The notes under the pieces: generated by a model
What the model was told of the DNA's origin: nothing
Databases searched by the model: none
Seen by the model: the letters and a program-made list of their open reading frames with translations, nothing else
Assembly (NCBI RefSeq): GCF_023055435.1
Contig: NW_025963850.1
Coordinates: forward strand, 1-64,000
DNA: 64,000 nucleotides
DNA from: Haliotis rufescens
Lineage: Eukaryota
Direction of reading: 5' to 3'
Shown: one piece after another, positions 1,633 through 52,809 of the stretch
Numbering within the stretch: the first letter of the stretch is position 1
How the letters are laid out: each line of letters begins with the position of its first letter
Position numbers and translations under genes: made by a program

Positions 1633-2725
1633 TCACTGCAGGATGTTGAGAATGTCCTCCCATTCGATCGTGCATCTCTCTTTACATGTCCATAGTGCTT
1701 TGACCAGGTCCAGATAGGTGGCCGAACTGCCATTCCACTGCTTCCATTTAGTGAGTATAATAAAGATCTGCATATACATTGAACATGGGTGTGCAACTCT
1801 GCCCTGTTGGATAGCCACAACGCTGAGCCCAAGTTCAATCCCGATATACTCAAATCCCATCCCGATATGTCTCGCAACAAGTCCGAGATCTCGTGGAGTT
1901 ACAGGAGTCTTCAGTCTCTCGTTCACACAGCGTTTTGAACCTACACAGAAATCTGTATTACTTGATGTAACACTAATTCTACCACAAAGGCTCACATAAA
2001 CAGGTTTCTTTCTGTTTTGTGTGATTGACATGTGGTATCGAATTAACCTTTATTCATCTCCAATGCTCATCGATATTCCAAATAAGCAATACAAATTGAC
2101 AGAAAAAGAAGTTGCACAAATCTTCCCATATACATATATGTCATCATAATAACGATCAAAATATGTTGAAAGTTATGCTGAACACATATGGCATATATTG
2201 CCAAATTTCTGAAATGAAATCATCAAATCATGATAAAGAATGTCGCACAAAATTATCAATTTAACGCACCTCTGCTTATGATCTGTTCGATCAGCTCGTT
2301 GCTTGACTGGTGCATTCTCTAGAACGAAAAACACACACAATCAATTGTGTGTCAAGATGACATGCTGTAGTATTTCCTGAAAGGCGTTGAACTCAAATAC
2401 AGTATTATTCTTCAGGTGGGATCAAACTTCCCCTCTATAACACTTAATATGGGATGATAAACTTCCACACAATAATACTGAATATGGAATGATAAACAGA
2501 GACAATGTCTGGCGGAACAGGAGTGAGTATATAAAGACTTTGAACCGTATGTTCGTTACCATATATCCACTATTAAGCATATATACAGAATGCCACACGT
2601 GTAGTGTTAAATGATGTGTACATATATTACTACCATTATTGCACCTTAATGAACATATCTAAAAGGGCGTTATTAAGACGTACCTGCCACTGAAGTCCGG
2701 AGAAGCACGAGGCAATGTTCCCCAT
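1633..2725 (-). CDS. DD1: N-acylation-signal, death-domain-only protein, subfamily A (132 aa, 3 exons)
   Basis: Exons 2725-2684 (MGNIASCFSGLQWQ, phase 0), 2318-2270 (RMHQSSNELIEQIISR+G, phase 1) and 1940-1633 (SKRCVNERLKTPVTPRDLGLVARHIGMGFEYIGIELGLS...WKQWNGSSATYLDLVKALW...NILQ*). All introns GT-AG; 399 nt in frame. The last exon matches the death-domain pattern (LA..IG..(W/F)..LG..LGLS..I......HP......LL.W....G..AT...L..AL). Confidence 0.85.
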
Positions 2726-3955
2726 GCTGCCTATTCATGTATGACACTGACGTACACCACTCTGTGTGTTCCAACTGGAATGACTAAATCAAAACCTCTA
2801 AGCTATATGTGAGCACAGCGGGACGCCCCGGCACGAGAGGGGACACAACGTCTCACGCTCTCTCGCAATAGCTTCAACCAAAGATTTCGGAATTTCGGAT
2901 TTTCGGATTTCAAAACTGATATAAAGGCGGAGTTTGGCAAAATGGTGTGTATGTGAAAGAGATTATAATATACCTATGTGGGGGTTATACCTCTTATCGT
3001 GCATTTTAAGTTTGTTGTCACACACTATGACCAACAATAATAAAGAAATAACATCACTGCAGTGTCGATAATTGACGTGTGGTCACAAAAGCAACATGCG
3101 GTTCAGTATGCCTCTTACACATGTAGATAAGAGAGCAGTGACAACTTCACTGAGATGCCTTTCTCCACTACGTCCAGCTGTTCAGTCAATAACCAAGCCA
3201 GCCCTTTCAAGGTGTCATGACTTATATGTTAGTCTTGCAACGAAGACAATAGACATGGAAATATTGCCACAAAAAGTAGTCTTTTAAAAAGGATAATAGG
3301 TCTCAATCTAAATAAGTTTCTAGAAATCATGACAATATCTGTGATAATGCAAGACAAAACTAAATACATGTTGTGTACAAAAGCTGTGGTACATTGTGGG
3401 TACTGGGTGACCTGGTCAACGTGTAGGATATATGTGGGCGTTATTTTGGCATTGATATGGAATACCGGCTAGCATAAATAGTTAGCGTGTTTAAGGAACA
3501 TATTGCTGTCTACAGATATTTTCTATATATTTTAGGCTTTGTAAACTGCAATCAGCAGCCTAAAAACTGAAAGAACAAGACCATAGCATGGATCAACACT
3601 TGATGTTAGACGTGTCAGCAATACGAAAATGTCCATGATTGGACTTTAATCATGATTGGATCTTCTTCAGCTGTAGTCAAGTCGTCCACACGGACAGACG
3701 GACACACTATCATACCTCTTCCAAATGTCCACTGCAAGGTCCACGTATCATGAATTTTGTTGACAATAATTTCACATACATTCTAATCGTTGACTTTCTA
3801 CGCCTTGTAAAACATCTTTCAAACGCAGGTAATGTGATGATCAACAACATTTCTATTAACAGTTCGTTCGTTACATCCATTTCAGTTTCCGGAATTTCAG
3901 ATTGCGAATGACAGAAGAACCCAATTAGTTATCACTTGCACATTCTTCCGCGTGA

Positions 3956-4106
3956 GGGGCGGTAGGGTAGTCCAGTGGTTATAATGTTCGCTCGTCACGC
4001 CTAAGACCCGGGTTCGAATCCTCACATGGGTTCAATGTGTGAAGCCCATTTCTGGTGCCCACCGCAGTGATATTGCTAAAATATTGCTAAAAGCCTTCAC
4101 TCATTC
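3956..4106 (+). mobile_element. tRNA-derived SINE (family 1)
   Basis: ggggcggtagggtagtccagtggtt (A-box-like)...gggttcgaatcc (B-box)...gaagcccatttctggtg. Homologous to 27269-27442, 38129-38290 and 56143-56308. Confidence 0.8.
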
Positions 4107-5361
4107 TCTCTTCCCCGTGTTCATATGAGGCAGAGTGACTAGTCGTTTCGAAGGACGGATGGATAATTAGCAATTGCTCAACTATAATGTCTCTCTGGGA
4201 TGATAATTGTTATAATGTGGTCTCCAGCCAGAGCTGCACTACAGCGTTTCTATTGCTGTTGATATGTAGAATATCTGTGAAACAACTGAACATGTATGTT
4301 AAGCTAGGGCAGATAAAATGTGTAGCTCTGAAGCCCAGATGACAGTAAATCATGCATGCTGACGGTATCTTATATAATTAGTGTGAAACGTAGCATGCAG
4401 AAAATGTAATCTTCGATTCGCTGATGTTATTATTCAGTCGCTCAGGAAAGATAAATTTCGTTGCACAGACCAAACCTAAGCACCCACCCATCGTCAGCTA
4501 CACAGAATTATAATTCTACTACATTTGTTACATGTAGGTTACAGTCAACGTCGCATATCATATCACACACGAGGTGAAGAAACGATATATATATCCTGTT
4601 ACTATATAAGACATTTGTTCCTTTCTCAATACCAGCTTATCATCAGTTGGTGTGTGGCATTGTAAAGGAATGACATTTGGAAACACACGTACTTGACCTC
4701 ATGGAATACAATTCTTCAATTACGTCATCTTTAAATAAAACCCGTTCTGTAATTGGAATAGATCTCGTCTAAACGCACATCATAAGCATGTGTTCAATGT
4801 GTTCAACTTCAGTGAAAGCAAAAGAAAACGCTGAACACAAATGAAATCATTGTACCGCTCTGTGCCGGTCACTGGTGGTTAATATGGAAGGATGGGTTAT
4901 CTTTCGTGCCAATTCTCGGGAAAGAGCAAAAGACTCCAACACATTCCTTGGTGTGTGGAACTCAAAAGTTGTAGACTTTTAAACATTTTTGATAGCCGTT
5001 AATATATAACAGTATAAATAACAATAATCACATCTTTACCAGTCTTTCATATGTACAATCACCAACAATATTGAGAAAGTCGTGCATTCACATATACATG
5101 TGCACACATTCGAACACATTCATGCACTGGAAACATATGATGCAACCCCTGTCGTCCCTCTCTGATCCCAGCACATCCTTACCTTATGCCTGTATTATCA
5201 GCATACTACACGTAGGTCACCAAACATTGTATTTCTGACAACACCTTAGCGTCATGTCTTTACATATGATAGTATGTCCCACGACACTTAACATGCATGA
5301 CACGAAGTATGACCCTTATATGTGTCACACAGTGATGGCCGTCTCTTTCACATGCACTGCA

Positions 5362-5389
5362 GGGGTGGGTGTGGGGGCTGGGTGTGGGT

Positions 5390-5436
<47 letters not shown>

Positions 5437-5492
5437 GGGTGGGTGGGTGGGTGGGAGGGGGGGGGGGTGCGGGGGTGGGGGGGGTGGGGGGG
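5362..5492 (+). repeat. (GT)n / poly-G low-complexity tract
   Basis: gtgtgt followed by a run of about 30 G and ggggt units. Confidence 0.9.
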
Positions 5493-7614: not shown

Positions 7615-7900
7615 TTAAAAGCGGGAGTTTCCTCTGAATGTGATACGCACATGCAGGTACATGCCTTCGCAGTTCTTCTGCTTCCATTTGGTAGGCATGT
7701 GTACAACTTGCATATATAGTGAATATGGGTATGCAAACGTACCTCGTTCGATAACCACAAGAGTAAGTCCAGGTTCGATGCCGACAATCTCGAACCCGAT
7801 CCCGATGTGACTTGCAACAAGGCTGAGATCTCTGTCAGATACAGGGGTATCCAACATCTCTTCATTCACAGCATATGCTTGGTTCCAGTGTGTTGGCCCT
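7615..7900 (-). pseudogene. DD2: truncated death-domain exon (subfamily B), local duplicate of DD3
   Basis: Acceptor tatag|GGCCAACAC, then EEMLDTPVSDRDLSLVASHIGIGFEIVGIEPGLTL...MPTKWKQKN. Similarity ends near 7670. No exons 1-2 upstream. Flanks 6890-7625 duplicate 8035-8895. Confidence 0.8.
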
Positions 7901-9086: not shown

Positions 9087-10232
9087 TTACACAGACACAG
9101 TGGACGGTCCCTGAAGGATGTTGAGAATGTCCTCCCACTCAATGGCACACATGTCATTGCAACTCCACAGTGCTCTGACGAGGACCAGGCTGGTTGCAGT
9201 TCTCCCGTTCTTCTTCTTCCACTTTGTAAGCATGTGCACAACCTGCATGTACAGTGAATAAGGGTGTGCAAACGTGACTTGTTCGATAACCACGAGAGTA
9301 AGTCCAAGTTCGATGCCAACAGACTCGAACCCGATCCCGATGTGACTTGCAACAAGGCTGAGATCTTGTTCAGATACAGGAGTATCCAACATCTCTTCAT
9401 TTACAGCATATGCATGGTTCCAGTGTGTTGGCCCTACAACATTAAACTCACAATAAACTACCTATTTACTTGTGTTCATTTTGTTTGATAGATGATGTAA
9501 CAACATTCGGTTCGCTTTCATTAATCCAAATTATTTCACTAAACAAAGAAAAATACGATACATACATACAGTAATTTAAAAAGAAATTAATGGGGTACAC
9601 ATAGAACTAAACTTCCTAAAATAGAATTATAAGACAAACAGATTGTTTAAATAAAGAACTAAAGGATGACTATGCTTGTCATAAGAGGCGACTAGCGGGA
9701 TCGGGTGGTCAGGCTCGCTGACATGGTTGATGCATGTTATTGTATCCCAATTGCGTAAATCGATACTCATGATGTCAATCAGTGGATTGTCTGGTGCAGA
9801 TTCGATTATTTACAGACCACCGTCATATAGCTGGAATATTGCTGCGTGCGACGTTAAACAAAAAACAAGCAAACCAAATAACAAACAATTTAATTTAACG
9901 TACATGTAACTCTCTCTGTCAGATTGGGTTCATTTTGGCAGTTTATCGAGTTCTCTGTGTTGGACAGCCTCTGGAATCGAATAAACACAGTTTCAAACAC
10001 GATTGATAGCTACGCCATCACAGCAATAAAACAATAAGGATAATCTTACATAAACTAAACAAGACAATGCAATGACAAATTCACGTGAACATGTACACAC
10101 GCATTACACATATTGACACGCTAAAGTTCGAATAGGGAAAGCATGTGAAATATGCCTATATACATATGTATACATAACATCTTGACCCACCTGATATCGG
10201 GATATTGGCCAGCATGAAACAATATTACCCAT
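9087..10232 (-). CDS. DD3: N-acylation-signal, death-domain-only protein, subfamily B (151 aa, 3 exons)
   Basis: Exons 10232-10191 (MGNIVSCWPISRYQ), 9970-9904 (RLSNTENSINCQNEPNLTERVT+T) and 9433-9087 (PTHWNHAYAVNEEMLDTPVSEQDLSLVASHIGIGFESVGIELGLT...WKKKNGRTATSLVLVRALW...). GT-AG; 456 nt in frame. Confidence 0.82.
9665..9880 (+). mobile_element. SINE-like interspersed repeat (family 3) in DD3 intron 2
   Basis: aagaggcgacta.cgggatcgggtggtcaggctcgctgac...tggattgtctggt.caga.tcgattatttacagacc...gctggaatattgctg. Homologs at 21582-21760 (+) and 28520-28740 (-). Absent from the paralogous DD7 intron. Confidence 0.7.
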
Positions 10233-10318
10233 GCTGTCTGTAATTATGCCTCTACTTCACACATGTGTATCCCACAGCCAGCCGACACAATCTGATAGTT
10301 TCGACTGTACTGACGGGC

Positions 10319-10351
10319 TTTATATATCGGACTAGCATAAGGGGATTCCCC
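10319..10351 (-). promoter_or_regulatory. TATA box + NF-kB (kB) site of DD3
   Basis: TATATAAA on the minus strand at 10326-10319. GGGGATTCCCC at 10341-10351, about 110 bp upstream of the ATG. Confidence 0.7.
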
Positions 10352-12903: not shown

Positions 12904-13297
12904 TGAGGTGAGGTGAAATGGGGTTTAACGTCGCGTCCAAGATTATTTCGCTCATATATCGACGTGCATTAGTGTGTGTGAGTGTGTGTGTGGGTGTGTG
13001 GGTGTGTGGATGGGTGGGTGCGTGCGTGCGTGCGTGCCGTACTAGTCCGGACTGATGCCGATTTATAGTGCAAGCTCAGTGAGATACCATGCCGCAGTTT
13101 AACATGAATACCCCACTCAGACACAGTATACTGACTCCGAGCCTACCAGTCCTTGTTTTATCCCTTAATGCCGAGCGCCAGACAGGGTAACAACTAGTAC
13201 CATATTTTAACGTCTTTTTGTATGACGCGCCCGGGGATCGTACCCCGGACCTTCCGTTCTCCGGGCGGACGCTCCACCACAAGACCAAGGAGGCGGT
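12904..13297 (-). mobile_element. tRNA-derived SINE (family 2, possibly Meta-domain) with (CTCAC)n tail
   Basis: Head accgcctccttggtct.gtggtggagcgtccgcc...ggggtacgatccc; body gtcatac.aaaagacgttaaaa.atggtac. Near-identical in layout to 55348-55698. Confidence 0.75.

Positions 13298-15285: not shown

Positions 15286-15287
<2 letters not shown>

Positions 15288-15370
<83 letters not shown>
15288..15370 (+). repeat. (GA)n microsatellite
   Basis: About 40 GA units. Confidence 0.95.
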
Positions 15371-15372
<2 letters not shown>

Positions 15373-16085: not shown

Positions 16086-16240
16086 NNNNNNNNNNNNNNN
16101 NNNNNNNNNNNNNNNNNNNNNNNNNNNNNNNNNNNNNNNNNNNNNNNNNNNNNNNNNNNNNNNNNNNNNNNNNNNNNNNNNNNNNNNNNNNNNNNNNNNN
16201 NNNNNNNNNNNNNNNNNNNNNNNNNNNNNNNNNNNNNNNN
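16086..16240. other. Assembly gap (155 N)
   Basis: Run of n. Confidence 1.
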
Positions 16241-16790: not shown

Positions 16791-19430
16791 TAATGTATAA
16801 ACAACCTGTAGATCAATCATCAAACCTTTTCAGTCATGGAACTAACCATATTGACAATGACAGTGTATTCGTATGGATGCATTGTATTGGTATCATGCAC
16901 AATCCGAAAATACACTCCACCCTGGCAGGTATTTCCACTCCAATTGTCCGTACTAATTGCAATTGCCAGGTGACGGTAGTTCACGTCCCTATATTTTCAG
17001 TAAGTAGTTGGTGCGGTATGGGGAACATGATGAGGTACCCAAAGGACCAGGACAAACTACGTAGGTATCATTCATGGTGTCATTGAACATCAGCATATGT
17101 CTGTGCACATGAGAATTGGACATGTTGCCATTGGAATCAACATCAGTGCTTATCATATTTCTCTCAATATGATCTTGTCTTGGAACAGCATAGTACTCCT
17201 TGCGTATCTGACAGTCCTCAGGTTGTGATTTTGACATATTTCATCACTCTTGGACATCCTATGAGAGTTACTTGATGAAAAGAAACAGTTGGTGTCTGTG
17301 AGCAGATCCCCCAAGGGAAGGCTATTTGTTTTTTCCATATCATCTGTTGTGAGATCAGGATTTTAACTTCATTTTTATAACAGACACTTGCACACATGGG
17401 ACATCTATCACAGACATTGTGTCTGGACGCCCCCATGGTTTTGCAGGTTAAAATAGACCCCAAGAGTCAATTGTGTACAGACCACCGAAACATAGATGGG
17501 ATGTAGGTGTCTGTCTGGCGTTTTACAACAAAACAAAGTATACTTTTCTTTTAATATCAATTTAACGCCGATTGTGCATTGGGTATGTGTTATTATATCT
17601 GGTGTCTGAAAATGATGTTATTACCTTACATTTATGATTTATCAATAAACATATGTAACATGAATTGTAGCCCTTAATTCCCATTCGTTTACTACCACTG
17701 TATGTTTCATATAAATGACAAAAGAAAAAGCCATCACAATAGATACAACAAAACAAAGGAATTAAACTTTACTCAAATAGAAAATTGATTTATAGTGAGT
17801 GAGTGAGGGGACGCAACTGTGCACAGCGAATCGCGGCGCCTTAGATGACTGGGCCACCCGTGCCCCCAAAATTGATTTATATATGACAAGACAGTTTTAT
17901 TAGCCAGTTCACAAAAGACACTTCACTTCCTTCATTGACGTCGGAGGTTGAAGGAGAGCGCTCGTTCGCCATGAACAAATCCCATTGAGCAAGACACACA
18001 AATGTTTATGGAATGTTACAACTAAACAAGGGATCCTTTAAAGTTTGGTGTTTACTTGGCCCTGGGTATAATATAGGTGCCCGGAATATTAAACCGGAAT
18101 CCCCACGGGGCACAACAATATTGCGAAACGAGATACATGAGTATCTGTCAAAATGTAGCAGTTGTTTATTTCATTGAAATGCTGTTAACTATTTTCATAT
18201 TGATGAGATATTAGAAGCCTATGTTTGCGCTTTGATATTTGAAGTGATAGGCCAGTTCCGTATCTTTCAGGTTTATTCGTTGAATTAACATAAACATACA
18301 TTCGGATATTTCGAATTGTACACATATATATAGCGCCATCGAAACATTCCTAAAATAATAAAATAATTCGGATAGCTCTCCGTCATTTACACCTGAGATT
18401 GAATCATTTTCTGTTATAACTCGCCACCCCAGTGCTGATGGCCATGTAAGACATGTCCATGTATTTGTACGTAAAAGATCCTGTATTATTTAGTGTTTGG
18501 CAGGGTAAGTCGTTGACGCATTGCCGCTCGGAACAATTACTTTGTATTGATAGACTTGCCGAAATCGTTTCGACTTAAGTCATGATTGAATTGATATACT
18601 AAACAGCATTCAAAGATTAATTAGAAGCACATTAGAGATACACTTTTTTCAACGGTTATTAAGAATATACCCTGGACACAAACAATACCGTGTTAAAACC
18701 ATTTTCCATTTGATGTTGATGAACATGATTTATGTGGTTTGTAGGATAATATTACCAACGCAGTGCTTCGTCTAACAAGTCGAACCAGAAATATATTATT
18801 TATAACGAACCTTGTCTGTCTCTCTTGAATGTGGTTAACCGGCTCAGTGTCTATTCTCTGTAATGGAAATGTTAACAGTTATCTAACTGTATATATGGAA
18901 TACTAGATGTACAAAATGTACGTTTTGATTGTTCAGTATAAGTGAGTAGGGTTAAAAGGGTTCATGTTAAAGTAGTGAGTGTGTATTGGTTAACGGTATT
19001 ACATTTATATTAAGACGTAGGGCACGGGGGCTTCCAGCCGTCTCAGGTGCCGTAATTCGCTGTGCAGAGTTGCGTCCATTGGTTCCTATGGTTCTAGGTT
19101 TTGTCAGCGCCGTACCCGTGCTCGTGAGAAACGTTTAAGACTTGCATCATTTCGGGATTTAGTACACGCCGTGATATGACTGGAATACTGTTCAAAGTGG
19201 TGTCAACACAATTTACGCACTTAAATTAAGCCTTTATCAATACGTGTCAAGTTGGTGAGGGAGGTAAGCCTGAAGTTATTACTAATATACACACGAGCAC
19301 AACACCCAATTCAAATGTTGCTATAATGCAATTGACCTAATACAGCTTTGGTTATGTAAATATTACACTGTACCTAAAAACATTAACAGGTAAATGAAGC
19401 AATGGTTATTTAAGAATGTCTTGGACCTAC

Positions 19431-19472
19431 CTGATACCGACATCCAGGCCAACATCGAAGAGTATTTCCCAT
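19431..19472 (-). pseudogene. DD4: orphan first exon of the DD family (no DD exon found downstream)
   Basis: ATG...CAG|gtaggt, 42 nt, MGNTLRCWPGCRYQ; same length and phase as exon 1 of the other DD genes. Candidate exon 2 at 18857-18811 (RIDTEPVNHIQERQT) ends in phase 2, unlike the paralogs. Confidence 0.6.
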
Positions 19473-19592: not shown

Positions 19593-19603
19593 GGGGATTC
19601 CCC
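19593..19603. promoter_or_regulatory. kB site upstream of DD4 exon 1, between DD4 and gene A
   Basis: GGGGATTCCCC within the near-palindrome gaaggggattccccttc. Confidence 0.65.
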
Positions 19604-21185: not shown

Positions 21186-24100
21186 ATGGATAGGGGGGAC
21201 AGAGAGGTGATAGCTCCGTACTTCACGGGGAAGAACAAGGCACTGAAGCTCACTGAAGTGTTGGAAATACTGGAGAACCCTGATGATACACGGGCTATAG
21301 TAACACCCCCTGCTCAACCCCATGGAGGAGACGGGTACTTGTACAGGGTGGAGGCAGACTCGGCGGAAGGTAGGTTAAAGAGTGCATGTCTTGAAGTTTT
21401 AACATTAATAAAAATGCATAATCTGATGAGTATTAATAAAGGGAGGATTAATAATGGAATAAGACAGTATTAATGAAACACTAAATTTGATTATTTATGT
21501 TGTGGGATGTGGTGTGATGGGGTCGTATGGGTGGGTATTGGGAGCAAGTAGCAGGTGTCAAATAGTCAAAGGAGCCACAGACCAGTGAAGATCCGGGGAA
21601 GAATTTATAGGTCTTCAGCAACACCTGTTTGCCGTAAAAGGTGACAATACTTGTAGTAAGAGGCGACTAACGGGATCGGGTGGTCAGGCTCACTGACTTG
21701 GTTGATGCATGTCGTCAATCCCAATTGCGTGTATCGAGGCTCATGATATCAATCACTGGAACAAAAACAAACACACAAAAGACGGAGTGGCATTTGGAAG
21801 GAGGGTAGTCATTGTTTCTAAAATAGTCCTGGGCTCGAATCTCAGATTTGTCTTTTATGTGATTCTAGGCTTGTAAACGTCGATGACCTATGAAGATCTA
21901 CGCCACTTTACGCCACTACTCCACTTTACCAAATGTTACTTTACTCATGCTTTAGCCTTCACAATGTAGAGATGAATAGCGACCTACTAGACCCACTGAT
22001 CCCTATGAACAATACAAATATAGTTGACTAAACGTTCACATACTAGTATGCTGTGATCGCGATCGTGATATCAGTTATATTTACACACACGTAAGGTTTA
22101 AATATAACCCGCTATTGACACAGTCAACACGTATATATGGAATGACAGCTCATCGCTCGCACTTCGTGGCAATGAGCCGGATCTTGCAAGGGAATATACG
22201 TACTCGTGTTACCTGTAATGAAAAAAACGTTCCCGACTGCAACTCGTAAATAGCACCCCGATCTGAGGCCATGCAACGCACTACCAAGCTCTTTGTATTG
22301 ATTCAGGTTGCAGATCAATGCACGTAGCTAGGCAGTGATAATGAAAACATTTTACGCTAAAAAGCATTGGCAGTTTCTCTTTCCAAACGCTACTTTTGAT
22401 GCAGAAAAACAAAACAACTAAAGAATTGCACTTAAAGAACATACGATGAAGTTGATTGTCAATGTATTGATTGGGCCGAAAGCTATGCAAATATTCACTA
22501 AGAAAGTTTGATTGCATGTGCGGTACTGATCAGGTAGCAGATGCACTATAAATCCCTTGTACATAATATTGTGGCAACATTATTTAACATTTTGTGATAT
22601 TTGTTACATTGTTTCATATTTACAAGTTTCAATTTATTCATAAATTAGAACGTGTTCTTGTCATCTTTGGTCTGAAGAAAGCCACCTTGAATTTAAATGT
22701 AAACTCACTTACAATTTGTGTCGACTTAGAACCTCTTAAATTTGGATTTAGACTGTTTGCCGTGAACAACGTTACATCCAGATTCGTCATTAGTTGACAC
22801 TGTCTATAACCTTCACATTGTGTCCTTAATAATAGTTCGTTATTGATCATTCTGTTTGATGGTGGACGTGGATGTAGGCTTGATTCTGTGTTTATATTAA
22901 ATTATGTTCATTGCAGCAGATACCAACTATAAACCAGGAAACATTGAATCAACTAACGCGAATTTTAGGGGGAAAACATGATCGAATCTGTATGTATATT
23001 ATATGAATTATTTTTATTGCAGCAGATCCCAAATATATAACTCAAATATATATCCCAAATATATAACCGAAACTAACACCTAACCGACCGAAATGACGTC
23101 TTGTAATCATTAAGTTAAGTTATTATTGCTCTACAGATTCCTGGGAAAATGACAACTACTACTTCAAGCACAATGGTTCTCGTGAACAGCCTAAACCTTC
23201 ACCCAAGGTTCTCAAGCAGGACTTCGTGGCTTATAAAAGTGATGGCACCACCACCGAGGCTTTTAAACGACAGGCATACAACTTGCTCGAGGGAGACGTG
23301 AAATATATATTAGTACACTACATTGGGAAATGCACAGTAGCATTATCCGATCCAAAATATGAGAAGCGTTTGAATACAGCCCTCCACCATGAATCCCAGA
23401 TAGTGAACAGTTACGCGATAATAGCTGGTTCTGGAGATGAAGATGGTGGAGATTGGGAGACCAGGGATATGGAATGTGATCATGATCGTGCAAATACTAA
23501 CTCTCCTACTTTCCTGGCTTCCTTAGATGAAGTTAGCTCAAGGAAAAGGACACATGACCCTGATATGGTAAATCGTGTGAAAACTCCTAAACGTTCAGAA
23601 AACGAACAAGTAATTGAAAACAATTTGATAGACATCATAACCACCGAAAGTGTTAGTCATCAACATGATGAAAGACCGACCAACCTCAAGTCACTCACCG
23701 AATGTTTGCTGAACAAACGTACTCATATCGTTATCGCAAGACGTGTGTTGAAGCAGGCAAAATACTGGGAGAAAAGCACCAGATTTCCTACCTTTGACAG
23801 TCCATGTTTATCATTAATCGCTGACATCGACTGTAAATGGAGAAATGACCTCACAGAAGTCAGTGACAGGTTGAAGTGGTCACGACTTAGCCCGGATGTT
23901 CTCGGCGAAGACCAGTGCAAGGATACGTATCACAGACTGGTATCTGCTGTCATAGTAGGTGCATATCACATGAAGACGGACATCACAGAGTTTGTTGACA
24001 CCCTCTATATGTACCCATCACATGTGATGGGTGACAACGCCTTAACAGATGACGACGATGGGACGGATCCTCAGATGTGCAAGGTGGGGCCCCACAACAT

Positions 24101-33100: not shown

Positions 33101-33139
33101 ATTACAGCTGAGGACAAGGACGGATGGAATAAAGAGTAA
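21186..33139 (+). CDS. Gene A: CG-1-like + Ulp1/SENP-type C48 peptidase + about 29 ankyrin repeats (1589 aa, 7 exons)
   Basis: Exons 21186-21369, 23137-24146, 24706-24834, 25876-26033, 26668-26782, 28054-28189 and 30102-33139. All GT-AG, phases 1,0,0,2,0,1; 4770 nt without an internal stop. C48 motifs WLGDE|VMNAYM, ILMPVN..NQHWVLL (His 25933), VVNS and QSDGHSCGVF (Cys 26762). N-terminus PAQPHGGDGYLY..DSWENDNYYF..FKRQAYNL..YILVHY resembles CG-1. The ANK exon is the 1012-aa ORF. Confidence 0.8.
24518..24695. mobile_element. Tc1/pogo-like MITE remnant in gene A intron 2
   Basis: Begins tacagg..gttataacgaact and has repeated inverted ttcgttataa(c/g) motifs. Ends just before the exon 3 acceptor. 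Confidence 0.5.
27269..27442 (-). mobile_element. tRNA-derived SINE (family 1)
   Basis: Reverse-complement copy with (GAGT)n tail. Confidence 0.8.
28520..28740 (-). mobile_element. SINE-like repeat (family 3)
   Basis: Reverse complement of the 9665-9880 type. Confidence 0.7.
28940..29245 (-). mobile_element. Mariner transposase N-terminal remnant in gene A intron 6
   Basis: Frameshifted translation MDKF*...PKAIHEDMNTALG...AAEFECNRECLEDDPRPGRPVKSATPELIQKTHVVVMTDRRMT, the mariner HTH / EDDPRSGRP / DRR motifs. Confidence 0.75.
30590..33126 (+). repeat. Coding minisatellite: about 25 near-identical 99-bp ankyrin units
   Basis: Unit ...gaatctgtagccgcacttctgatcaagaatggtgcaagtgttacagctgagga.aaggacggatggacggcacta.at.tagcttgtcagaatggacat. 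Confidence 0.95.
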
Positions 33140-41969: not shown

Positions 41970-42624
41970 TAACTGCAGGATGTTGAGAATGTTCTCCCAT
42001 TCGATCTCCCTTTACTTTTCCAGAGTTCATTGACCAGGACCATATAGGTGGCTGAACTGCCATTACACTGAACATCCATTTAGTGAGCATAATCAAGATC
42101 TGCATATACATTGAACATGGGTGTGCAACTCTGCCCTGTTGGACAGCCACAATGCTTAGCCCAAGTTCAGTCCCGATAGACTCAAATCCCCTCCCAATAT
42201 GTCTCGCAACAAGTCCGAGATCTCGTGGAGTTACAGGAGTCTTAAGTCTCTCGTTCACACGGCGTGTTGAACCTACACACAAATCTGTATTACGTGATGT
42301 AGCACCAATTCTACCACAAAGGCTCACATAAACAGGTTTCTTTCTGTTTTACAATATCTCAAATACTCATCAATATTCTTAATAAGCATTACAAAATAAA
42401 ACAATCGAAATTGGCCTATGTCCTCCCATATTCATTTATGTCATCATAATAATGAGTAAAATATGTTAATAGTTACACTGAACACATTTGATACTAGTAT
42501 ATTACAAAATTCCTGAAATGAAATTATCAAATTATAATAAAAGAAATTCTCACAAAATTCTCAATTTAATGTGGGGATTTAACACACCTCTCCTTATGAT
42601 CTGCTTGATCCAGTACTCGATCAG
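41970..42624 (-). pseudogene. DD5: 5'-truncated, frameshifted subfamily A DD gene
   Basis: DD exon 42272 to about 41970 with a frameshift after MLTKW, a small deletion and a lost stop. Only the 3' half of exon 2 remains (about 42588-42624). Exon 1 is replaced by the next duplicated unit. Confidence 0.8.
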
Positions 42625-44237
42625 GAGACCGTCTGAGACCAGTATCACTTCGGGCTTTCCTCTCACATTAAGCTGTCACGCCGTGATATAACTGGAATAC
42701 TGTTAAAAGCGGCGTTGAACCTCAACTCACTCACTCACACACTCTGGAGATTGAATTAGAAGGAAATTAGATTCAGCCCCACTCACACCCGACATTGACG
42801 CAACATGGTGATTGTCCCTTGCCGATCTCAAATTATCAAGATTTCATTTCAATTACATGTTATCGCAAGCCGTACTGCTCGCTATTACAAACATTATCCT
42901 TTCTTGTATCCAGTCAACGAAGTCAGTTGTAGACAATGTCAGGGATAGAAAAGGTTGAATAATGCATACCACGTTTACGGTAGCTGGTCAAAGGGAGGCA
43001 ACTCTGTTTTCAGATACTATGTCAGCATTTGACGAGACCTGGATACTGTGGGTAAAATGCTTACAGGCGTATTGTCAATAGAGGCATCACCTGTAGCTGT
43101 TCGTACTGGGCTAAAATGACTTTGTTTTCTGAATGTGGCAAATGTACGTAATATTGACGCAAGGTATAATGAAATGAAGTGCACTGATGTTTGAACGGCT
43201 TTAAATGTTCTGTTTTGGGTTGAACTCATTTTCCAGAATGGAAATAGTATTTTCCTGTTTTAAATCATACCATGAAGCAAATTTGTTCTTCACCTCATGT
43301 ACATGAAATTTTGATCTTTTGATCACCAAAACCATTGTACCTGTTACCTATTGTTCAGGTTGTGAGAAAGGGAGAGAAAACGTTTATGCTTACTTATGCT
43401 ATTCCTATATAAACAGAAGGACGGTTTGAATATTTGAAACGATGTACAATATGAAGGTTGTATAGCACTGTGATCGAACTACGAATTACGAATTTGTTCT
43501 GATTACTGACTTGAATAATCAGTTTTTTATTCAATTTAATTTAGAAAGTATGTGAATTTCTGAGTAATTAATCATTGCTATCACTGTGAGGTGGAGGTAT
43601 TTGAATTCGTCAGAGATGTTTGTATGGATAAGAGCGACAAAACCCTTTGCATAATCACAAGAAATCTCTGTTGTAAGCAGACTCCATTTTACGATCATGA
43701 CTTTATTAAAAGCATCACTATGAACTGTCAGTATTTCCGGGAGATATTTCACATGTAAAATCGAATCCGTAGCATTCTAAATTCAATAAATATAAAATGT
43801 CAGCGCCAGAGAATAACCAGTCTTGGATATCCACCGAAACAGATTCCATTGGGCGTAAACGGCAAAATAGCTGGGAAAACTATGGGAATGGATAACTGAT
43901 AATCACTGATGACACCACGTCTTGTGAAAGTGCACGCATGTCCTGCCCAACCGGTAGGAGCCGCCATTGGTTCAATCTGACTCCACGTGTAAGAGCCGCC
44001 ATTGGTACAATCTGACTTCACGTGTTCTTTGGGTAAACTTGCAAATGCAGAAAACACAAAGAAACAGTGATTTGATAAATATATTTACTGATCGCTGTAA
44101 AGTAGAGGTGAGACTACAATATCTCTAAACAAGGTAAAAAGGTATGACGATAGTCATGTTCGAAATGATAAAAACAAAGTTTCATTTCTTGTAATATTTC
44201 TCCGACCGAGGTGCAATTACACTGTCAAGGAGGGCCG

Positions 44238-45133
44238 TCACTGCAGGATGTTGAGAATGTTCTCCCATTCGATCGTGCATCTCTCTTTACATGTCCATAG
44301 TGCTTTGACCAGGTCCAGATAGGTGGCCGAACTGCCATTCCTCTGCTTCCATTTAGTGAGCATAATCAAGATCTGCATATACATTGAACATGGGTGTGCA
44401 ACTCTACCCTGTTGGATAGCCACAATGCTGAGCCCAAGTTCAATCCCGACATGCTCAAAGCCGATCCCGATATGTCTCGCTACAAGTCCGAGATCTCGTG
44501 GAGTTACAGGAGTCTTCAGTCTCTCGTTCACACGGCGTGTTGAACCTACACACAAATCTGTATTACGTGACGTAACGCCAAAATCATCACATATAAACAG
44601 GTTCTGTTTATTGTGTGACTGATATGTGATATCGAATTAACGTATCTCAAATACTGATCGATAATCATCATTACAAAATGACAGAAAATGAAACCGTGTA
44701 TATCCTCTGATATACGTATATGTCGTCAAATAATGACCACAAAGTTGATAGTAATACTGAACAAATGGGATATATAACCAAATTTCTGAAATCATTTTTT
44801 TTCAAATTGAGACGTACAACGTCTTACACAATTATCTTTTTAAAATGGGAATTTAACGCACCTCTCCCTATGTTCTGATGGATGCAATACTCGATCAGCT
44901 CGTTGTTCGACTGGTGCATTCTCTAGAACGAAAAGCACACAATATCACGTTGGTCAATAATTCTGTTACCGTATATCCACTTTTAACCACACAAAATGCA
45001 CTAAGCTGAGGATTGAATGTTGTGTACATGTTATATTACTGCTAGCTTAAGTGTATAAACATCTTCATAGAAGAAAGTTATTAAGACGTACCTGATACTG
45101 AAGTCCTGAGAAGCACGAGACTAGATTCCCCAT
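44238..45133 (-). CDS. DD6: N-acylation-signal, death-domain-only protein, subfamily A (136 aa, 3 exons)
   Basis: Exons 45133-45092 (MGNLVSCFSGLQYQ), 44922-44862 (RMHQSNNELIEYCIHQNIGR+G) and 44545-44238 (STRRVNERLKTPVTPRDLGLVARHIG...NILQ*). GT-AG; 411 nt. Confidence 0.85.
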
Positions 45134-45231
45134 GTTGTCTGTATCTAACCTTATATGACGCCGAAGTGCACTACTCTGTTTGTTGATCCTACCTGACTGA
45201 ATCAAGACCTCTCAGCTACATGTGAGCAATA

Positions 45232-45242
45232 GGGGAATCCCC
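45232..45242. promoter_or_regulatory. kB site of DD6
   Basis: GGGGAATCCCC about 100 bp upstream of the ATG. Confidence 0.7.
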
Positions 45243-45291
45243 TGTACCAGGTTGGACGCAACTTCTCTCTCGATCCAAGGCTTCCATCAAG

Positions 45292-45980
45292 TGAGTGATC
45301 GTGAGTGAGTTAATATTTAAAGTCACATCGGCACTATTTCAGCCATATCGCGACTTGAACAAGTTAAACATTTATATTATATATAAAAAACCTGTCGCCG
45401 AAGGACAGTACAACAATTAGCAATATATCACAGATTATAATTTTAAAAACTAATTTTAGAGCAATAAAACGATCAAATTAAATCAGACGACACAGTATAA
45501 AAACGGGCTGTAGATCGCTAGCAACCGAAGCTAGGCCACCATACTAGGGACCATGGGGACTTACGGTACTTCTGCTACCTACATGGTCCCCAGCAGGATT
45601 TACACCATCCCTCGGGCTACTGGCGATGATCAGAAATATTAGCCAAACAGTTAAAATCAACAAAAATGCTACGATTAAAATCACAGCAAAATGAAAAGAT
45701 ACTTTGAATGATACCGGACTTACGTACCTTCCCAGGGGGACAATTGTTTTACGATACTTCAACCCCCTGTGAAGATACAGCCACTAACAATCCAAGTCAT
45801 GAATTCAATTTACCAAATTAAAATCACTTTCTATATACTATACATATTATAATCAAAATTTATCTATTAATTCTATTTCTTTTAAAAAACCGATGAGTAA
45901 ATGCGCACTGATACTAAAAAGATCCTTGATGGACGAAACTTTGAAATACTTATCCCTTGTAATGGAAAAATCAATACAGT
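45292..45980 (-). mobile_element. 5'-truncated LINE (I/Nimb-like ORF2 C-terminus + 3' UTR + (ACTC)n tail) with 16-bp TSD
   Basis: DCIDFSITRDKYFKVSSIKDLFSISAHLLIGFLKEIELIDKF*. TSD caaggcttccatcaag at 45276-45291 and 45981-45996. The paralogous DD1 promoter (about 2865-2885) is an empty site. Confidence 0.8.
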
Positions 45981-48012
45981 CAAGGCTTCCATCAAGGATT
46001 TCGGATTTACGGATTTTCGGATTTACACTAACGGCGTGCGTCAAACTGATCTGTAATGAGAACCAGATTACAGAAGCCCTATATCAGAGGCATACTGCTT
46101 GTCATGTGTGTTAAGTGTGGTGTGAGAGACTGTGAACAACCTTCATAAAGAATCCACACGACAAAAGTGGTGGAAAATAAAAACACAAGGTTGGAATGCC
46201 GTTATAAAGCTGAGGGATAAGATAACCCCCAATATCACGGGATCAGTGAAGAAATTTAGGATGCAATATTCTCTTTTCAAACAGTGTAAAAGCTGCTATT
46301 TCACGACATTTGAGATTGGCTAACGTGTATTGGTATTAATAGTGAAAAGGAAAGTGAAAAATAAAATCATGTTTATTTGATACTGAGATAATGTTCGTCA
46401 ACTTTGGAAATCAAATACGAAGCTGTTAATAGAAAGAAGGATGGTAATTTGCTGAATATGGGACACAAAAAGTCGGATTCTCGGAGTTAGGAGTTCATTC
46501 GGCAATTTAGTCTTTGGCTGAAGTGAACATATGAGGGAGCAGTCACTTCACTTCAATTCTTTCTCCACTAAGCCCAGCTGTTCAGTCAGTAATCGATTCC
46601 TCCCTTTCCTGGATACATGCCTGACATGTTCATTTTTCGATGAAGAAAAAAGACATGGGGATATGGTCTCAAATGAAATAAACAAAATGGATATTTTGAG
46701 AATGTATTGTGGTACAGTGTATCTCTTTCATGTAAGCTTTGAACACATATTATAAATAAGTAGCATCTTTGAAGTTATTAATATAGATAGTCAAACATCG
46801 TTTGTAAATACGTAAATACTAAGAGTTATCCGAGGTTTGACACAACTGAAAATAAATAAAGATAAATACGCAGGGACCAATGTTTTATTTCGAGACAAAC
46901 GTAAGTTCGACACACCAAAGGTCGACACAACGGTGTCTGATTGCACGTATCTATAAATCTTGAAATAACCGTAAAAAATGTATATATTAAACAGAATGTC
47001 TTTGGCAGGGCAAGTAAAAAATAAAAAATAGATATTGTATCTAAGACCTATGGTACTCTTTGTGAAGTGCGTCAAATGTAGGACATGCGTCGGCGTTGTT
47101 AATGTTTAATACTGGCTCATATAAATAGAAAGCTTTTTTGAAGGGATATGTTTATGTCTACATATATACTCCTCTTGAGTCGTATGTAGGTAAAGAAGAA
47201 CCCGAAATTTGTGGTCCTGAAAGTTTTAGAAGAATATGTCAATCCATGCATTAATGATGTGCACTGGCTCTGAAAAGGTGATCACACTTGCTGCATTACC
47301 AGATCTGTCGCAAGCTGTCATCCATTATGCCTGCGAACTACTACTTGATAAGTATTTGAATAGAATCAAGCGACAAAACCCTTTCCAAATTCACTAGAAA
47401 ATGTCTGTTAAAATCAATCAGAGTCGATTGCACGATTCCAACCAGGAAATAAACTACCAAATAGCATACAGCTGTTTCAATGGCAGTAGGTTCCTGTCAG
47501 CTCAATATTTAGGGTCGAGATGAAGGGATTCAGTAATTAAGTGTTGCACTGAGTGGGTGTGAATGTTAGCGTTTTGTGAGAGGCAGTTCTTTCGTTACGT
47601 TAGTTTCAGTTTCCGGATTTTCGGATTACGGATTACGTTTAGGGCAAATCTCTTCACAACTCGCTCAATCTTCCGCTAATATCACGAGAGGCAGAAAGAC
47701 AAGTTGTTACAAAGGGCATCGTAGCAGCTAATTCACAACATTTATTCTAAAGACAAATACAATCACAATGTATCATATACGGAAAATATATAACTTTACA
47801 TATGACGAGCGTTCAGTTCTATACAGAAATAGATGGTAGTCCCTGAAGCATGGTTGAGTGTTCAGTGCAGCACTAGCACGAGGAAACAAAAAATAAGGCA
47901 TGATTTTACTACATGTTGTCGCTGAAACTCAGTGAAACATACATATATCCCCACTCGTGTGTTCACAGCAATGAAGCCAGAGGGTGTACTCAACAGTAAT
48001 GTTCCGTCCTGA

Positions 48013-48943
48013 TTACCCAGACGTAGATGCTGGTGACAGTAGGATGTTGAGAATGTCCTCCCACTCAATGGTACAGCTGTCATTGCATCTCCACAATGCT
48101 CTGACAAGGACCAGTCCGGTGGCAGATCTTCCGTTCTTCTCCTTCCACTTGGTAAGCATGTGTACAACCTGCAAGTACAGTGAACATGGATGCGCAAACG
48201 TGACTTGTTCGATAACCACGAGAGTAAGTCCAAGTTCGATGCCAACAGACTCGAACCCGATCCCGATGTGACTTGCAGCAAGGCTGAGATCTCGTCCAGA
48301 TACAGGAGTATCCAACATCTCGTCATTTACAGCATATGCTTGGTTCGGGTGTCTTGGCCCTACAACATTAAACTCACAATAAACTACCTATTTACTTGTG
48401 TACATTGTGTTTGATAGATGTAACAACACTCAGTTCACTTTCATTATTCTAAATTAGCCTCACTAAACAAAAACAAAAAATACGACACGTCCATGAATTC
48501 ATCCACTCATCCATATGGTAATGTGGAAAAAATGATTGTGGTACTCATAGAGCTATACTTCCTCAAATATTATAAGACAAACAGATCGTTTCAATTCAAT
48601 GAAACTAAAAAAATGAAACAATGTGTTCCAACGTACCTCTCTCTGCCGGGTCGCGTTTATAATGACATTTTATCGAGTTCCCTGTGGTGGTCAGTCTCTG
48701 GAATCGAATAAACACAGTTTTAAACACGATTGATAGCTACACTATCATAGCAATAGATCATCTTACATAAACTAAACTAAACAAAACAATGCAATAACAA
48801 ATGCACGTGTACACACGCCGACGCGCATTATAAACATTGATACGTTAACGTGCGAATCGGGAAAGAACGTGAAATAAGCCTGTGGCTGTATATATACCCA
48901 CCTGATATCGGAATCTTGACCAGCATGAAACATTATTACCCAT
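48013..48943 (-). CDS. DD7: N-acylation-signal, death-domain-only protein, subfamily B (149 aa, 3 exons)
   Basis: Exons 48943-48902 (MGNNVSCWSRFRYQ), 48697-48637 (RLTTTGNSIKCHYKRDPAER+G) and 48359-48013 (PRHPNQAYAVNDEMLDTPVSGRDLSLAASHIG...). GT-AG; 450 nt. Confidence 0.85.
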
Positions 48944-49029
48944 ACTGTGAGTATCTATGCTTCTACTTCACACACGTGTATCCTACAGCCAGCTGACACA
49001 GTCTGATACTGTCGACGGTTCTGACAATC

Positions 49030-49062
49030 TTTATATATTGTAGTAGCGTAAGGGGATTCCCC
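49030..49062 (-). promoter_or_regulatory. TATA box + kB site of DD7
   Basis: TATATAAA (minus) at 49037-49030; GGGGATTCCCC at 49052-49062. Confidence 0.7.
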
Positions 49063-52000
49063 TGCCTTTGGTAAGGAATTGTCAGTCACAGGCAACTTAC
49101 AACCGGTTTTGGGATCGCAGTTCGGATTTTAGGATTTCATTCGCCATATCAGGATGATAGGCATGGGTAAAATACTTGTGCCGGTAGTATAAACACTTGC
49201 GTCAGTCGTGTGTTTATAGCCTTTTAGAAGTTGGAAGAATGTGAAAAAATGGAAGGTGTTTGGATGACAACTTCTTGCCCGTTCATCGTGTGACGATGCA
49301 GGTGAAGGAAAGACGAAGTAGCCCTCAAATGTCGTAACAAACAATAGAGAAGTTGTGATCCATAAGAGTTTCACGTGTGTTTGGATCATACTTGCGCGCA
49401 AGTCATAGCGATACTTGTGTTCTCTGGGCCATCTGTCTTGTTCAGGTGCAGTAAATAATACACTTCTTTAAGTTTATTCAGTTAAATTGTTCATTTTGGC
49501 TTTCATCAGATCATCTGTAGATACGCGTGTTCTCATTTTCTTTATCAGCAATACACGGTATGCAGAAACTGATCAAGACAGGAACCATTAAAACCATTTC
49601 ATCACATTTCTTTTGATGTTACGATTATAAATGATTCTGTCTTCAGTCTATGTATTTTGGCAAGGATGTTCAAACAAAAACTTTTGCATATGATATATGT
49701 GTCTCAAAGCAATATTACCAAGGAACATGATACGTATATACATCGGTAAGTGTTGGAAGCTTACGCCGTAATATGATCAATTAGATCAAACCGATGTACC
49801 ACACTAAAATCATTGATCCGAAAACCCGACAAAATGTTATACATGTAAATACATGTCGCTAGAGAAGCTGTACATACCGGAATGTGTACATAGGAACAGT
49901 CATGTTGCTGTGCGGATAAGGATATGAGTTCGCGGGTAGTGTCAGTAGGAGGTGTATACGATTTTACGTGCTGAATGGGCTTGAAAATATGAAGAAGAAA
50001 TGAGGGGAAATATGAGCAGTGATGTGGTTTGGTATATTGAGGAAATGATATAACATGTTGTCTACATTCACATGTCTCATCATATAAGTGTGCATCATAT
50101 AAGTGTGCACAAAACACTTGAACTTGTGTAGTTGTCAATAGTGCATAAGATAACCAGGCAGTGATCAATACGTAGTGTAAAATTGACTTCCGCCAGAACA
50201 GATATAATGATGTCTCACTGTGACATGAGTGCATAACGAAGAACCTCCTTTGAACTAATTGTCTAGTTGAACGTTCCACTGTTTGATTGATGTCGATGTG
50301 CATGGGAAGCAGTTCAGTCACCTCGCATCTACTCCCGATATATCCCGCGAAGACTGAGGGATCATCTGTAGTTAAATTCTGTTCATTATTATAAAAGGAA
50401 TATCTGCTAAAACCTAATCTTCATCAACTGAAGAGGAATATGCAGAATGGTTATAGTATTCAACAATGTACGATTATCCCAGATAAACTCAATATTTTAT
50501 GGTTAATATATCGTACCCACATTACACAGGCGAAGTTAGTATCAGAACCATTGTCAGATATTAAGTAATTGGTGACTGAATAAATTATACATTTGAACTA
50601 TACATGGGACAGGTTTTTGGACCAATGAAGTGAAATTTTCCATTTACAAAGAACATATATATTTACCTTCTCGTGTACCCGGACACAGGCTTACTTGAAT
50701 GGCTTGACGATCGACCACGTCGGGTTCGATTCTCAACATGACAATAACGTTTATGACAAGTTTGATGCACTTGTGGTATGTGGACATAATATTTAAAATG
50801 TTAAAAATGGTTACTTTTATTATTCTGTTTCGTGTGAGAATTATGCATCACCTGTAGTATGTGGTACTCTATTAAAGTTAAATTGTGCGTAAATAGTAAA
50901 GCGAGCGGTACGATGTTTCAGGACTTTCGGATTTTCGGATTGTCGTGAAAAGGCTTATTGAAAAGAAATGCATGTCGTTACGAATAAGTTCTGATTACTG
51001 TTTGCAAACACTTGAATATGTTTTTATCATTGCTATCACTGTGAGGTGGAAGTATTAAAAGCTTCCGGCTCGTGGTATTTAACATAGGGCGGGACGCATA
51101 AAACCAAATGAACCCCTCGTGGTATTGCTAAAATGAATGTATCTTACTGACATGTTGCACTTGTTAAAGAATGGATGCAAAATCAAAATTGATAGAAAAC
51201 AGATGTTCGATAGAGCTGAGGATAACTTGTGCTATGTCACGCGACTTTCACTGACTCGGAAAACGCGTGCGGCTTTTTGCTTCGAAGCGGGGTTGAAGGG
51301 ATTCATTCTCCCGCTCAGGGATCACGTGATGCCTGTCTTCTTCGTGGCGGGGTATAAGCGATTATTCTCCCGCTGAGACATTTATGTTCCACCCAGACAG
51401 AATGCATAGTATTTTATCAAGATCACGTGAACCAATCATATATCAACATTCTGAAATGGAGATATAATGGAACAGAACATAGAATAATTAGAAATATCTG
51501 CCAAACGTAAAGCAGATTTTTTGAATCTGACTTTATCATAAGTATGTGTTATTTTATGCAGTGTCAACTTAACTTGGAGGAAAACTGTAGCGCAGATCAT
51601 TCACGCTTACCACTTTGGCAGAACCTCCGATCATTGGTATGTTTCTAACAAACCAACAATCATAATCAGCACAAATCTGGGATTCGAACTCACAATCATA
51701 GGATTTCGCCTTGCTGATTATGAACAGCTATCTGCAACGCATCAGACTACTAAGACACCACATTGAGTCGTGGAAATGAATTGCTGGATATATGACAAAT
51801 ATAGACTTCATCGCATTACCGAGCTCAACACTGTAGTATATGTTCCTTCCGATTGAAGTTAACTGAAATATGATAAAACACAAGACTACGATGTTTCATT
51901 ATTCTTTGTATATTTCTGAGCGATATTTCACAGATCTAATGGAATCCAAAGCATTCCGAATTTAGTATTTCATATCATTACACAGGCCAGACAGGGAGCG

Positions 52001-52171
52001 GAAAAATCCCCCGATAGGTGTGATAACTATATATATTTGCTATACATGAAGGCAAATCACATAGCCACTTTTACCTCGACACATCTGATCGCTGTACAGG
52101 AGGGGTGATATCGATATCAAAATATCATGATTCCACCATTTATTGAATGTATATTATTACTGAGATTACAG

Positions 52172-52809
52172 TGACTGCAGGATGTTGAGAATGTCTTCCC
52201 ATTCAATCGTGCATCTCTCTTTACATGTCCAGAGTGCTTTGACCAGGACCAGATAGGTGGCCGAACTGACATTCCACTGCTTCCATTTCGTGAGCATGGG
52301 TGTGCAACTCTGCCCTGTTGAATAGCCACAACGCTGAGCCCAAATTCAATCTCGACATACTCAAAGCCGATCCCGATATGTCTCGCAACAAGGCCGAGAT
52401 CTCGTCTAGTCACTGAAGTCTTGAGTTTTCCGTCATCACAGTGTGCTGAACCTATATGACAAATACAAGAGACACAAAATGTTATTTAACGGCTGTAATT
52501 AGATGTAAGATTATAATATTAGTTCCCGAGAGCTGTTATTCTGACAAAACAGTTTAAGAGAAAAAATAACTGAAATGATAACATGGGCATGGGAAGCTAA
52601 AACATAGTACAGTAAAACAGTTAAAGAGAAATACAGGAAACCACAGGGGACAATCATGTATCAGCTTTACATATAGAGCATAGAGGACGCGCATAAACAC
52701 TGATGAACAGTGTCACGCTGACATTCATTAATTGTTGGGAAAATACGTGAAGGGAATCTTAACCTACCTGATATCTGAATCTTGACCAGTATGAAACAAT
52801 ATTACCCAT
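52172..52809 (-). pseudogene. DD8: chimeric DD pseudogene
   Basis: Exon 1 at 52809-52768 is MGNIVSYWSRFRYQ (subfamily B type, Cys to Tyr). DD exon from 52451 is subfamily A type, with a frameshifting deletion after VAHPC. No exon 2 recognised. Confidence 0.75.

Follow-up and report, generated by a model that had tools for sequence, protein, structure and literature searches.

The first 64,000 nucleotides (nt) of Haliotis rufescens contig NW_025963850.1, referred to here as the window, carry copies of a gene family whose products consist of a 14-residue N-terminal peptide (M-G-N-x-x-S-C-aromatic), a variable linker and one death domain (DD), modelled as a six-helix fold resembling that of CRADD (RAIDD). 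The intact copies are genuine protein-coding genes, and the family, amplified in tandem, is restricted to Haliotis. Given the form of the N-terminal peptide and a conserved kB-like promoter site, we consider it fairly likely that its products have a DD as their sole domain, are held at membranes by lipids and there modulate the DD assemblies of immune or cell-death signalling; NF-kB probably makes their expression inducible.

Six first exons of 42 nt lie on the minus strand of the window, with start codons at 2725, 10232, 19472, 45133, 48943 and 52809 and a GT immediately after each. These exons had been listed in a preliminary description of this DNA, and their peptides are exactly as quoted there. 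A combination of tblastn and a hidden Markov model (HMM) scan located seven DD exons or relics of them, again all on the minus strand. Four loci (G1–G4) are intact genes of three exons with GT-AG introns, a preserved reading frame and products of 132–151 amino acids (aa); their second introns measure 277–470 nt. The splice junctions proposed earlier (2684/2318 and 2270/1940 in G1, 45092/44922 in G3 and 48902/48697 in G4) all combine AG acceptors with GT donors and keep the frame. Gene models were guided by homology and by RefSeq; brute-force combination of candidate second and third exons gave thousands of spurious models. Chance can be excluded as the origin of this arrangement, since exon length, phase and splice sites are all conserved among these paralogous copies.

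Family statistics were drawn from the window, from 30 loci of 3.3 kb and from twenty 10-kb pieces of the gene cluster. Among the 22 distinct first-exon DNAs in this set, the exon is always 42 nt long and always in phase 0. Met-Gly-Asn is invariant, with glycine encoded by GGA, GGC, GGG or GGT and asparagine by AAC or AAT. Ser6 is found in 20 of these exons and Cys7 in 19, while positions 4, 5 and 8–12 vary freely. A similarity search that did not require an ATG returned no exon-1 homologue lacking one. With dS at about 0.4, pooled Nei-Gojobori estimates over 28 distinct intact copies put the ratio of nonsynonymous to synonymous substitution (dN/dS) at 0.40 in exon 1 and at 0.28 in the DD core. 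Judged from these sequences, the first exon is coding and constrained.

The constrained residues are those that N-myristoyltransferase (NMT) and a palmitoyl-transferase would need, and their conservation is therefore the strongest indirect evidence for lipidation. As a test for NMT recognition we used PROSITE PS00008, G-{EDRKHPFYW}-x(2)-[STAGCN]-{P}. All four intact window genes match this pattern and possess Cys7, which agrees with the earlier claim that intact genes keep Gly2, Ser6 and Cys7 within an NMT consensus. Variants with Arg6, Leu6 or Phe6 fail it; a copy with Tyr7 matches, without the cysteine. The H. rubra protein P0161 carries Cys6. Both Ser6 and Cys7 are kept in 28 of the 29 copies with an intact DD. 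Across 39 distinct loci, 28 retain the motif together with an intact DD, 6 retain it with a DD that is broken or absent, 1 has lost it beside an intact DD and 4 have lost it with a DD that is broken or absent (Fisher p = 0.011, for loci that are paralogues and not independent). The two defective window copies that still have a first exon follow the pattern noted before, the 19472 copy having Arg6 and the 52809 copy Tyr7. Because the loci are paralogues, the association is suggestive only, and motif loss appears to accompany gene decay.

Domain searches used single exons or RefSeq proteins, with joined translations serving as frame checks. Against the Pfam Death profile (PF00531; gathering score 22.6 bits), the DD exons of G3 (28.8) and G2 (25.6) pass and those of G4 (21.9) and G1 (20.8) fall just under the cut-off; among full-length RefSeq relatives, P0002 (26.5 bits) and P0004 (25.8 bits) lie above it, in line with the domain assignment first made from the window. 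Death was the only Pfam domain found, with no CARD and no TIR; CARD-DD proteins exist separately (P0012 of H. asinina, P0018 and P0023, by Pfam). An AlphaFold2 model of P0002, computed from a 32-row alignment, places six helices between residues 56 and 142 with a predicted local distance difference test (pLDDT) score of 94–98. Residues 1–35 score below 50 and are predicted to be disordered. The closest fold by Foldseek is the RAIDD/CRADD DD, 2o71 (target-normalised TM-score 0.87, root mean square deviation 1.8 Å, 26% identity). PDB ranks 1–36 are all DDs, with those of ankyrin-G, TRADD, RIPK1, PIDD and FADD coming after RAIDD.

The likeness to CRADD is not exclusive. In a search with a profile built from the family only, the ankyrin-G DD came first, at E 1.7e-9, whereas the CRADD DD reached E 1e-6; the stronger CRADD score of another profile arose because that profile included true CARD-DD proteins. 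Of the earlier suggestion of a CRADD-like DD without its CARD, the closest fold and the sole Pfam domain speak in favour, but the family-only profile does not single out CRADD. In a quick maximum-likelihood tree of 159 DDs the family is monophyletic (Shimodaira–Hasegawa-like approximate likelihood-ratio support 100) and falls within the same large unresolved half as the CARD-DD proteins P0012, P0018 and P0023, its sister group not being resolved. The most variable part of the genes is exon 2, which measures 49, 61 or 67 nt and encodes a linker of 16–22 residues, a variability that fits a flexible tether. Together with the start of exon 3, this linker is predicted to form a disordered N-terminal tether of about 35–45 residues.

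A kB-like palindrome upstream of the TATA box was newly recognised in this analysis. Five copies of GGGGAWTCCCC stand in the window where 0.02 would be expected; all of them precede an MGN start codon by 109–131 nt, with a TATA-like box about 25 nt downstream of the palindrome. In the wider set, 28 of 37 distinct loci have a GGGRNNYYCC site upstream, at 84–131 nt from the ATG. When 34 distinct promoters are aligned, this site forms the best-conserved island, with flanks that barely align between subfamilies. Rel/NF-kB homologues are present in abalone (PMC11103948), and the position of the palindromes suggests that the family may be under their control. In G1/G3-type promoters we also noted conserved tandem repeats of GAAATCC/GAAAATCC/GAAATTCC (window positions ~2880–2915, minus strand), about 60 nt upstream of the kB-like site; these could be further kB half-sites or IRF-like sites.

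The family extends well beyond the window. In a six-frame search of the genome, DD-exon matches numbered at least 150. With one exception they lie on the minus strand of C594 (41.58–41.92 Mb) and of the unplaced contigs C6 and C72, C72 being the contig of the window. Many match pairs are identical between contigs, C6 and C72 partly duplicating the C594 cluster. A profile search of 1.84 billion cluster representatives returned four below E 1e-30, all from Haliotis, followed by generic DDs. RefSeq holds three-exon models with an MGN start from H. rufescens (P0005 and P0152/XP_048253155, the latter on the same contig as the window), from H. cracherodii (P0002 and P0004, named 'death domain-containing protein CRADD-like') and from H. 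rubra (P0161, starting MGNISCW); in the H. asinina model P0162 the same peptide is internal, behind a longer predicted N-terminus. Members are named either "uncharacterized" or "CRADD-like", and the product of G1 exons 2 and 3 is identical to RefSeq LOC125381047. A literature search covering abalone and other molluscs found no paper on these genes, on a natural myristoylated DD protein or on DD-only decoys. The preliminary description had called the family hidden and knew of no described counterpart: the genes are indeed hidden from the track of open reading frames (ORFs) and absent from the papers found, but the MGN-starting three-exon models were already in RefSeq. They are thus annotated but undescribed in the literature.

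A wide distribution of the lipidation exon was considered and rejected: of the 150 best DD relatives, those with a fitting Met-Gly start all belong to the Haliotis family except for P0144, a clam protein. This protein (Mercenaria mercenaria XP_053383887, 1086 aa), whose DD spans residues 83–167, begins with MGSCLSR, which is a classic myristoyl-plus-palmitoyl motif; other molluscs may thus sporadically have lipid-anchor motifs beside a DD. Small DD-only genes of Haliotis that form a sister group lie at C1:67.016–67.020 Mb, C594:5.336–5.338 Mb, C594:21.84–21.86 Mb and C27:178 kb, with the proteins P0014, P0106 and P0119. P0014 and P0119 have a Cys-rich N-terminus and no Met-Gly start, and the stretch of P0014 left out by the DD-exon genome matches ends in YRRYQ, as the MGN exon does. 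An N-terminus of this type may represent a palmitoylation-only anchor.

Limited transcript evidence comes from contigs of four runs, presumed to be RNA, from four studies over window positions 43900–49100. A 743-nt contig of run X10 removes 48360–48636 exactly, as a GT..AG intron on the minus strand, and so joins exon 2 of G4 to exon 3; it has 159 further 5' letters beyond the matched part. The genome match of a run X2 contig ends exactly at the exon 3 acceptor, 48359. Splicing of exon 2 to exon 3 is supported at the family level, and that of exon 1 to exon 2 is predicted from conservation and from the RefSeq models. Within the same region, contig depth is very high in each of the four runs at positions 45292–45987, where loose ends finish in GAGTGAGTGA; we take this segment, immediately upstream of the G3 promoter, for a repeat that is abundant or expressed.

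We propose the following sequence of events. Met1 would be removed and Gly2 myristoylated during translation, and Cys7 would then be S-acylated at the membrane. On the cytosolic face, the DD would join or cap homotypic DD assemblies of the PIDD/CRADD, MyD88/IRAK, FADD or TNFR type. Because a kB-like palindrome lies about 25 nt upstream of the TATA box, Rel/NF-kB probably drives transcription, which would make the family an inducible layer of the response. We favour an inhibitory or decoy role, because the proteins have no effector domain; they might act in feedback as c-FLIP, CARD-only and PYD-only proteins do, a nucleating adaptor being less likely. The direction of the effect is the least certain step.

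Several observations weigh against this proposal. The evidence for myristoylation and palmitoylation is a consensus match, and P0002 and the H. asinina protein P0162, which RefSeq models as complete, have Leu6 or Phe6 and fail PS00008. The function of the kB-like site is likewise read from sequence alone. RefSeq starts P0001 (G1) and P0003 at a Met inside exon 2 and not in the MGN exon, and in G1 an out-of-frame ATG at 2738 (minus strand) precedes the MGN start codon by 13 nt. As to transcripts, the RNA nature of the four runs was guessed; their contigs over 43900–49100 do not contain the exon 1–exon 2 junction, run X1 contigs cover intron 2 unspliced, and the depth over G3 is zero in all four runs. 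The number of copies per haplotype is below 150, probably some tens, because C6 and C72 partly duplicate the C594 cluster. As a separate observation, the upstream out-of-frame ATG of G1 is absent from the other window copies and from G1-type paralogues.

The anatomy that we interpret as a membrane-tethered inhibitor or decoy is the same as would be expected of a membrane-tethered activator, a reading that we regard as unlikely. An anchored DD would here nucleate Myddosome- or PIDDosome-like assemblies, expression alone would switch signalling on and the kB-like site would provide positive feedback. In Drosophila embryos, artificial targeting of the DD proteins Tube or Pelle to the membrane by a myristoylation signal reportedly activates the Toll pathway, and TRAM is a natural myristoylated adaptor. 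However, the abalone proteins have no effector or second interaction domain with which to pass a signal on (Pfam finds Death only), and the known single-domain death-fold proteins are mostly inhibitors. Rather unlikely, too, is a broader scheme in which tens of NF-kB-driven, dual-acylated DD-only proteins and hypervariable ankyrin-repeat genes, arranged head-to-head, form a two-part innate-immune module, the DD proteins tuning or capping DD hubs or serving as bait for pathogen effectors that target DDs. If true, the scheme would provide the first example in nature of a death-domain adaptor or decoy system anchored by lipids.

We find it improbable that the proteins are soluble, with a coding first exon whose product is not lipidated and acts as a degron, a binding peptide or similar. 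Lipidation being argued from a consensus match, the RefSeq-modelled members with Leu6 or Phe6 would fit such a reading, but conservation falls exactly on the positions required for NMT recognition and palmitoylation: Gly2 never changes although four codons are used, and Ser6 and Cys7 persist in nearly every intact copy while the surrounding positions vary. Quite improbable is translation of the G1/G3 subfamily from the exon 2 Met, with the 42-nt exon serving as a 5' untranslated region or upstream ORF. This would account for the start of P0001, for the upstream ATG of G1 and for the exon 1–exon 2 junction not being seen in the reads; yet the 42-nt frame of exon 1 stays open and in phase 0 in this subfamily, with only synonymous changes at Gly2 and Asn3, and RefSeq models the sister subfamily from the MGN start codon. 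Finally, an array made up mostly of junk from recent segmental duplication, with no maintained function, is very improbable, for although the window holds four decayed beside four intact copies and the assembly contains duplicated contigs, the DD evolves under purifying selection (dN/dS as above), 28 distinct copies are intact and the family is present in four Haliotis species.

A lipid-anchored DD-only family would have partial counterparts among known proteins. Its links to CRADD/RAIDD are the best structural match (2o71), the family-only profile match and the 'CRADD-like' names given by NCBI; it differs from CRADD in having a lipidation-type N-terminus in place of the CARD and in existing as tens of tandem copies rather than one gene. 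According to one paper (PMC11463336), APAF-1 is missing from molluscs, in which the activation of CARD caspases may depend on CRADD. With TRAM (TICAM2) the family may share, by analogy only, the plan of a small signalling adaptor with a single interaction domain and an N-terminal myristoyl-glycine anchor, whereas TRAM carries a TIR and not a DD, is not homologous, is a single vertebrate gene and has no second anchor of the Cys7 type. The CARD-only and PYD-only proteins and the short forms of c-FLIP are similar in that they consist of one death-fold domain without an effector domain and have undergone lineage-specific duplication; these proteins, often tandem duplicates, are inducible inhibitors of homotypic assemblies. 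They differ in using a CARD, PYD or DED instead of a DD, in being soluble and in having few copies, not tens.

NRADD (NRH2), which is among the weaker PDB matches, is also a small protein made essentially of a membrane anchor and one DD, but its anchor is transmembrane, its DD is of the p75NTR type and the gene is a vertebrate one. Src-family kinases, G-alpha i/o and eNOS likewise begin with Met-Gly, have a small residue at position 6 and carry a Cys among the first seven residues, next to the myristoyl-Gly; these proteins are otherwise unrelated and mostly have the Cys at position 3. In a mollusc, innate-immune genes have reportedly expanded in tandem in a lineage-specific way. For mollusc death-domain expansions, our literature search turned up no account of DD-only genes with a lipid-anchor motif. 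Death-fold signalling normally reaches membranes through transmembrane receptors or lipid-binding adaptors. In our literature search no natural DD was found described with a myristoyl- or palmitoyl-type anchor as its sole other feature. With a dual-acylation-type anchor joined to a DD, tens of copies and a kB-like site, the family combines properties of single-domain death-fold regulators and of lipid-anchored adaptors.

If the anchor is real, the family would offer a simple test of what membrane tethering alone does to DD assembly, and it would constitute an inducible and hugely amplified new layer in mollusc immunity or apoptosis control. For annotation, the consequence is more immediate: at least two of these genes begin at an internal Met in RefSeq, and the motif is lost from their models. 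Coordinates of the genes, relics and promoter sites in the window are collected in Table 1.

Table 1. Members of the family, their kB-like sites and the assembly gap in the window (positions are those of the 64,000-nt stretch)
Feature	Position	Strand	Remarks
G1 exon 1 (MGNIASC start)	2684..2725	-	42 nt, phase 0; GT donor at 2683
G1 exon 2 (linker)	2270..2318	-	49 nt; AG acceptor and GT donor
G1 exon 3 (DD and stop codon)	1633..1940	-	identical to RefSeq P0001; G1 protein 132 aa
G1 degenerate kB-like site (GGGGCGTCCC)	2820..2829	-	104 nt before ATG
G2 exon 1 (MGNIVSC start)	10191..10232	-	42 nt
G2 exon 2	9904..9970	-	67 nt; donor 6 nt further on than in G4, frame kept
G2 exon 3 (DD and stop codon)	9087..9433	-	G2 protein 151 aa
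G2 kB-like palindrome (GGGGAATCCCC)	10341..10351	-	119 nt before ATG; TATATAA 94 nt before ATG
G3 exon 1 (MGNLVSC start)	45092..45133	-	42 nt
G3 exon 2	44862..44922	-	61 nt
G3 exon 3 (DD and stop codon)	44238..44545	-	G3 protein 136 aa
G3 kB-like site (GGGGATTCCCC)	45232..45242	-	109 nt before ATG
G4 exon 1 (MGNNVSC start)	48902..48943	-	42 nt
G4 exon 2	48637..48697	-	61 nt; joined to exon 3 in run X10 contig
G4 exon 3 (DD and stop codon)	48013..48359	-	G4 protein 149 aa
G4 kB-like palindrome	49052..49062	-	119 nt before ATG; TATATAA 94 nt before ATG
Defective 52809 copy, exon 1 (MGNIVSY start, Cys7 to Tyr)	52768..52809	-	
Defective 52809 copy, DD exon	52174..52451	-	28-nt deletion near 52294, frame shifted
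Defective 52809 copy, kB-like palindrome	52917..52927	-	
Defective 19472 copy, exon 1 (MGNTLRC start, Ser6 to Arg)	19431..19472	-	fails PS00008
Defective 19472 copy, putative exon 2	18811..18857	-	47 nt, hence different phase
19472 copy, kB-like palindrome	19593..19603	-	
DD-exon pseudogene	41972..42272	-	+2 insertion, -7 deletion; exon 2 reduced to its 3' 37 nt (42624-42588)
Truncated DD-exon fragment	7672..7898	-	first 227 nt of exon; no first exon
Assembly gap	16086..16240	.	155 N; no exon of any model touches or spans it

The decayed copies have lost different parts of the gene. The 52809 copy has no usable exon 2, and the DD-exon pseudogene at 42272–41972 is without a first exon. For the 19472 copy, the HMM scan found no DD in the read sequence from 18810 down to 16241, and the idea that its third exon had merely diverged was rejected by the six-frame HMM scan. 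The assembly gap lies between the G2 promoter site and exon 2 of the 19472 copy, its nearest family features, and its sole possible bearing is that the missing third exon of that copy could lie inside it. Because the second introns of intact genes are short and no DD occurs down to 16241, deletion of this exon is the more likely explanation.

Two plus-strand neighbours stand head-to-head with defective copies. An ankyrin-repeat array of about 28 repeats spans 21186–33139 opposite the 19472 copy (ORF 30101–33139, Pfam Ank E 1.7e-235), and a second gene, at 58661–64000, faces the 52809 copy. Two insertions distinguish G2 from G4. At the old GT of exon 2, an inserted TTACAT has shifted the donor by 6 nt, adding two codons and changing the junction codon from Gly to Trp. 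In intron 2, a short interspersed element (SINE)-like insertion of about 180 nt (9690–9870, minus strand) is absent from the equivalent intron of G4.

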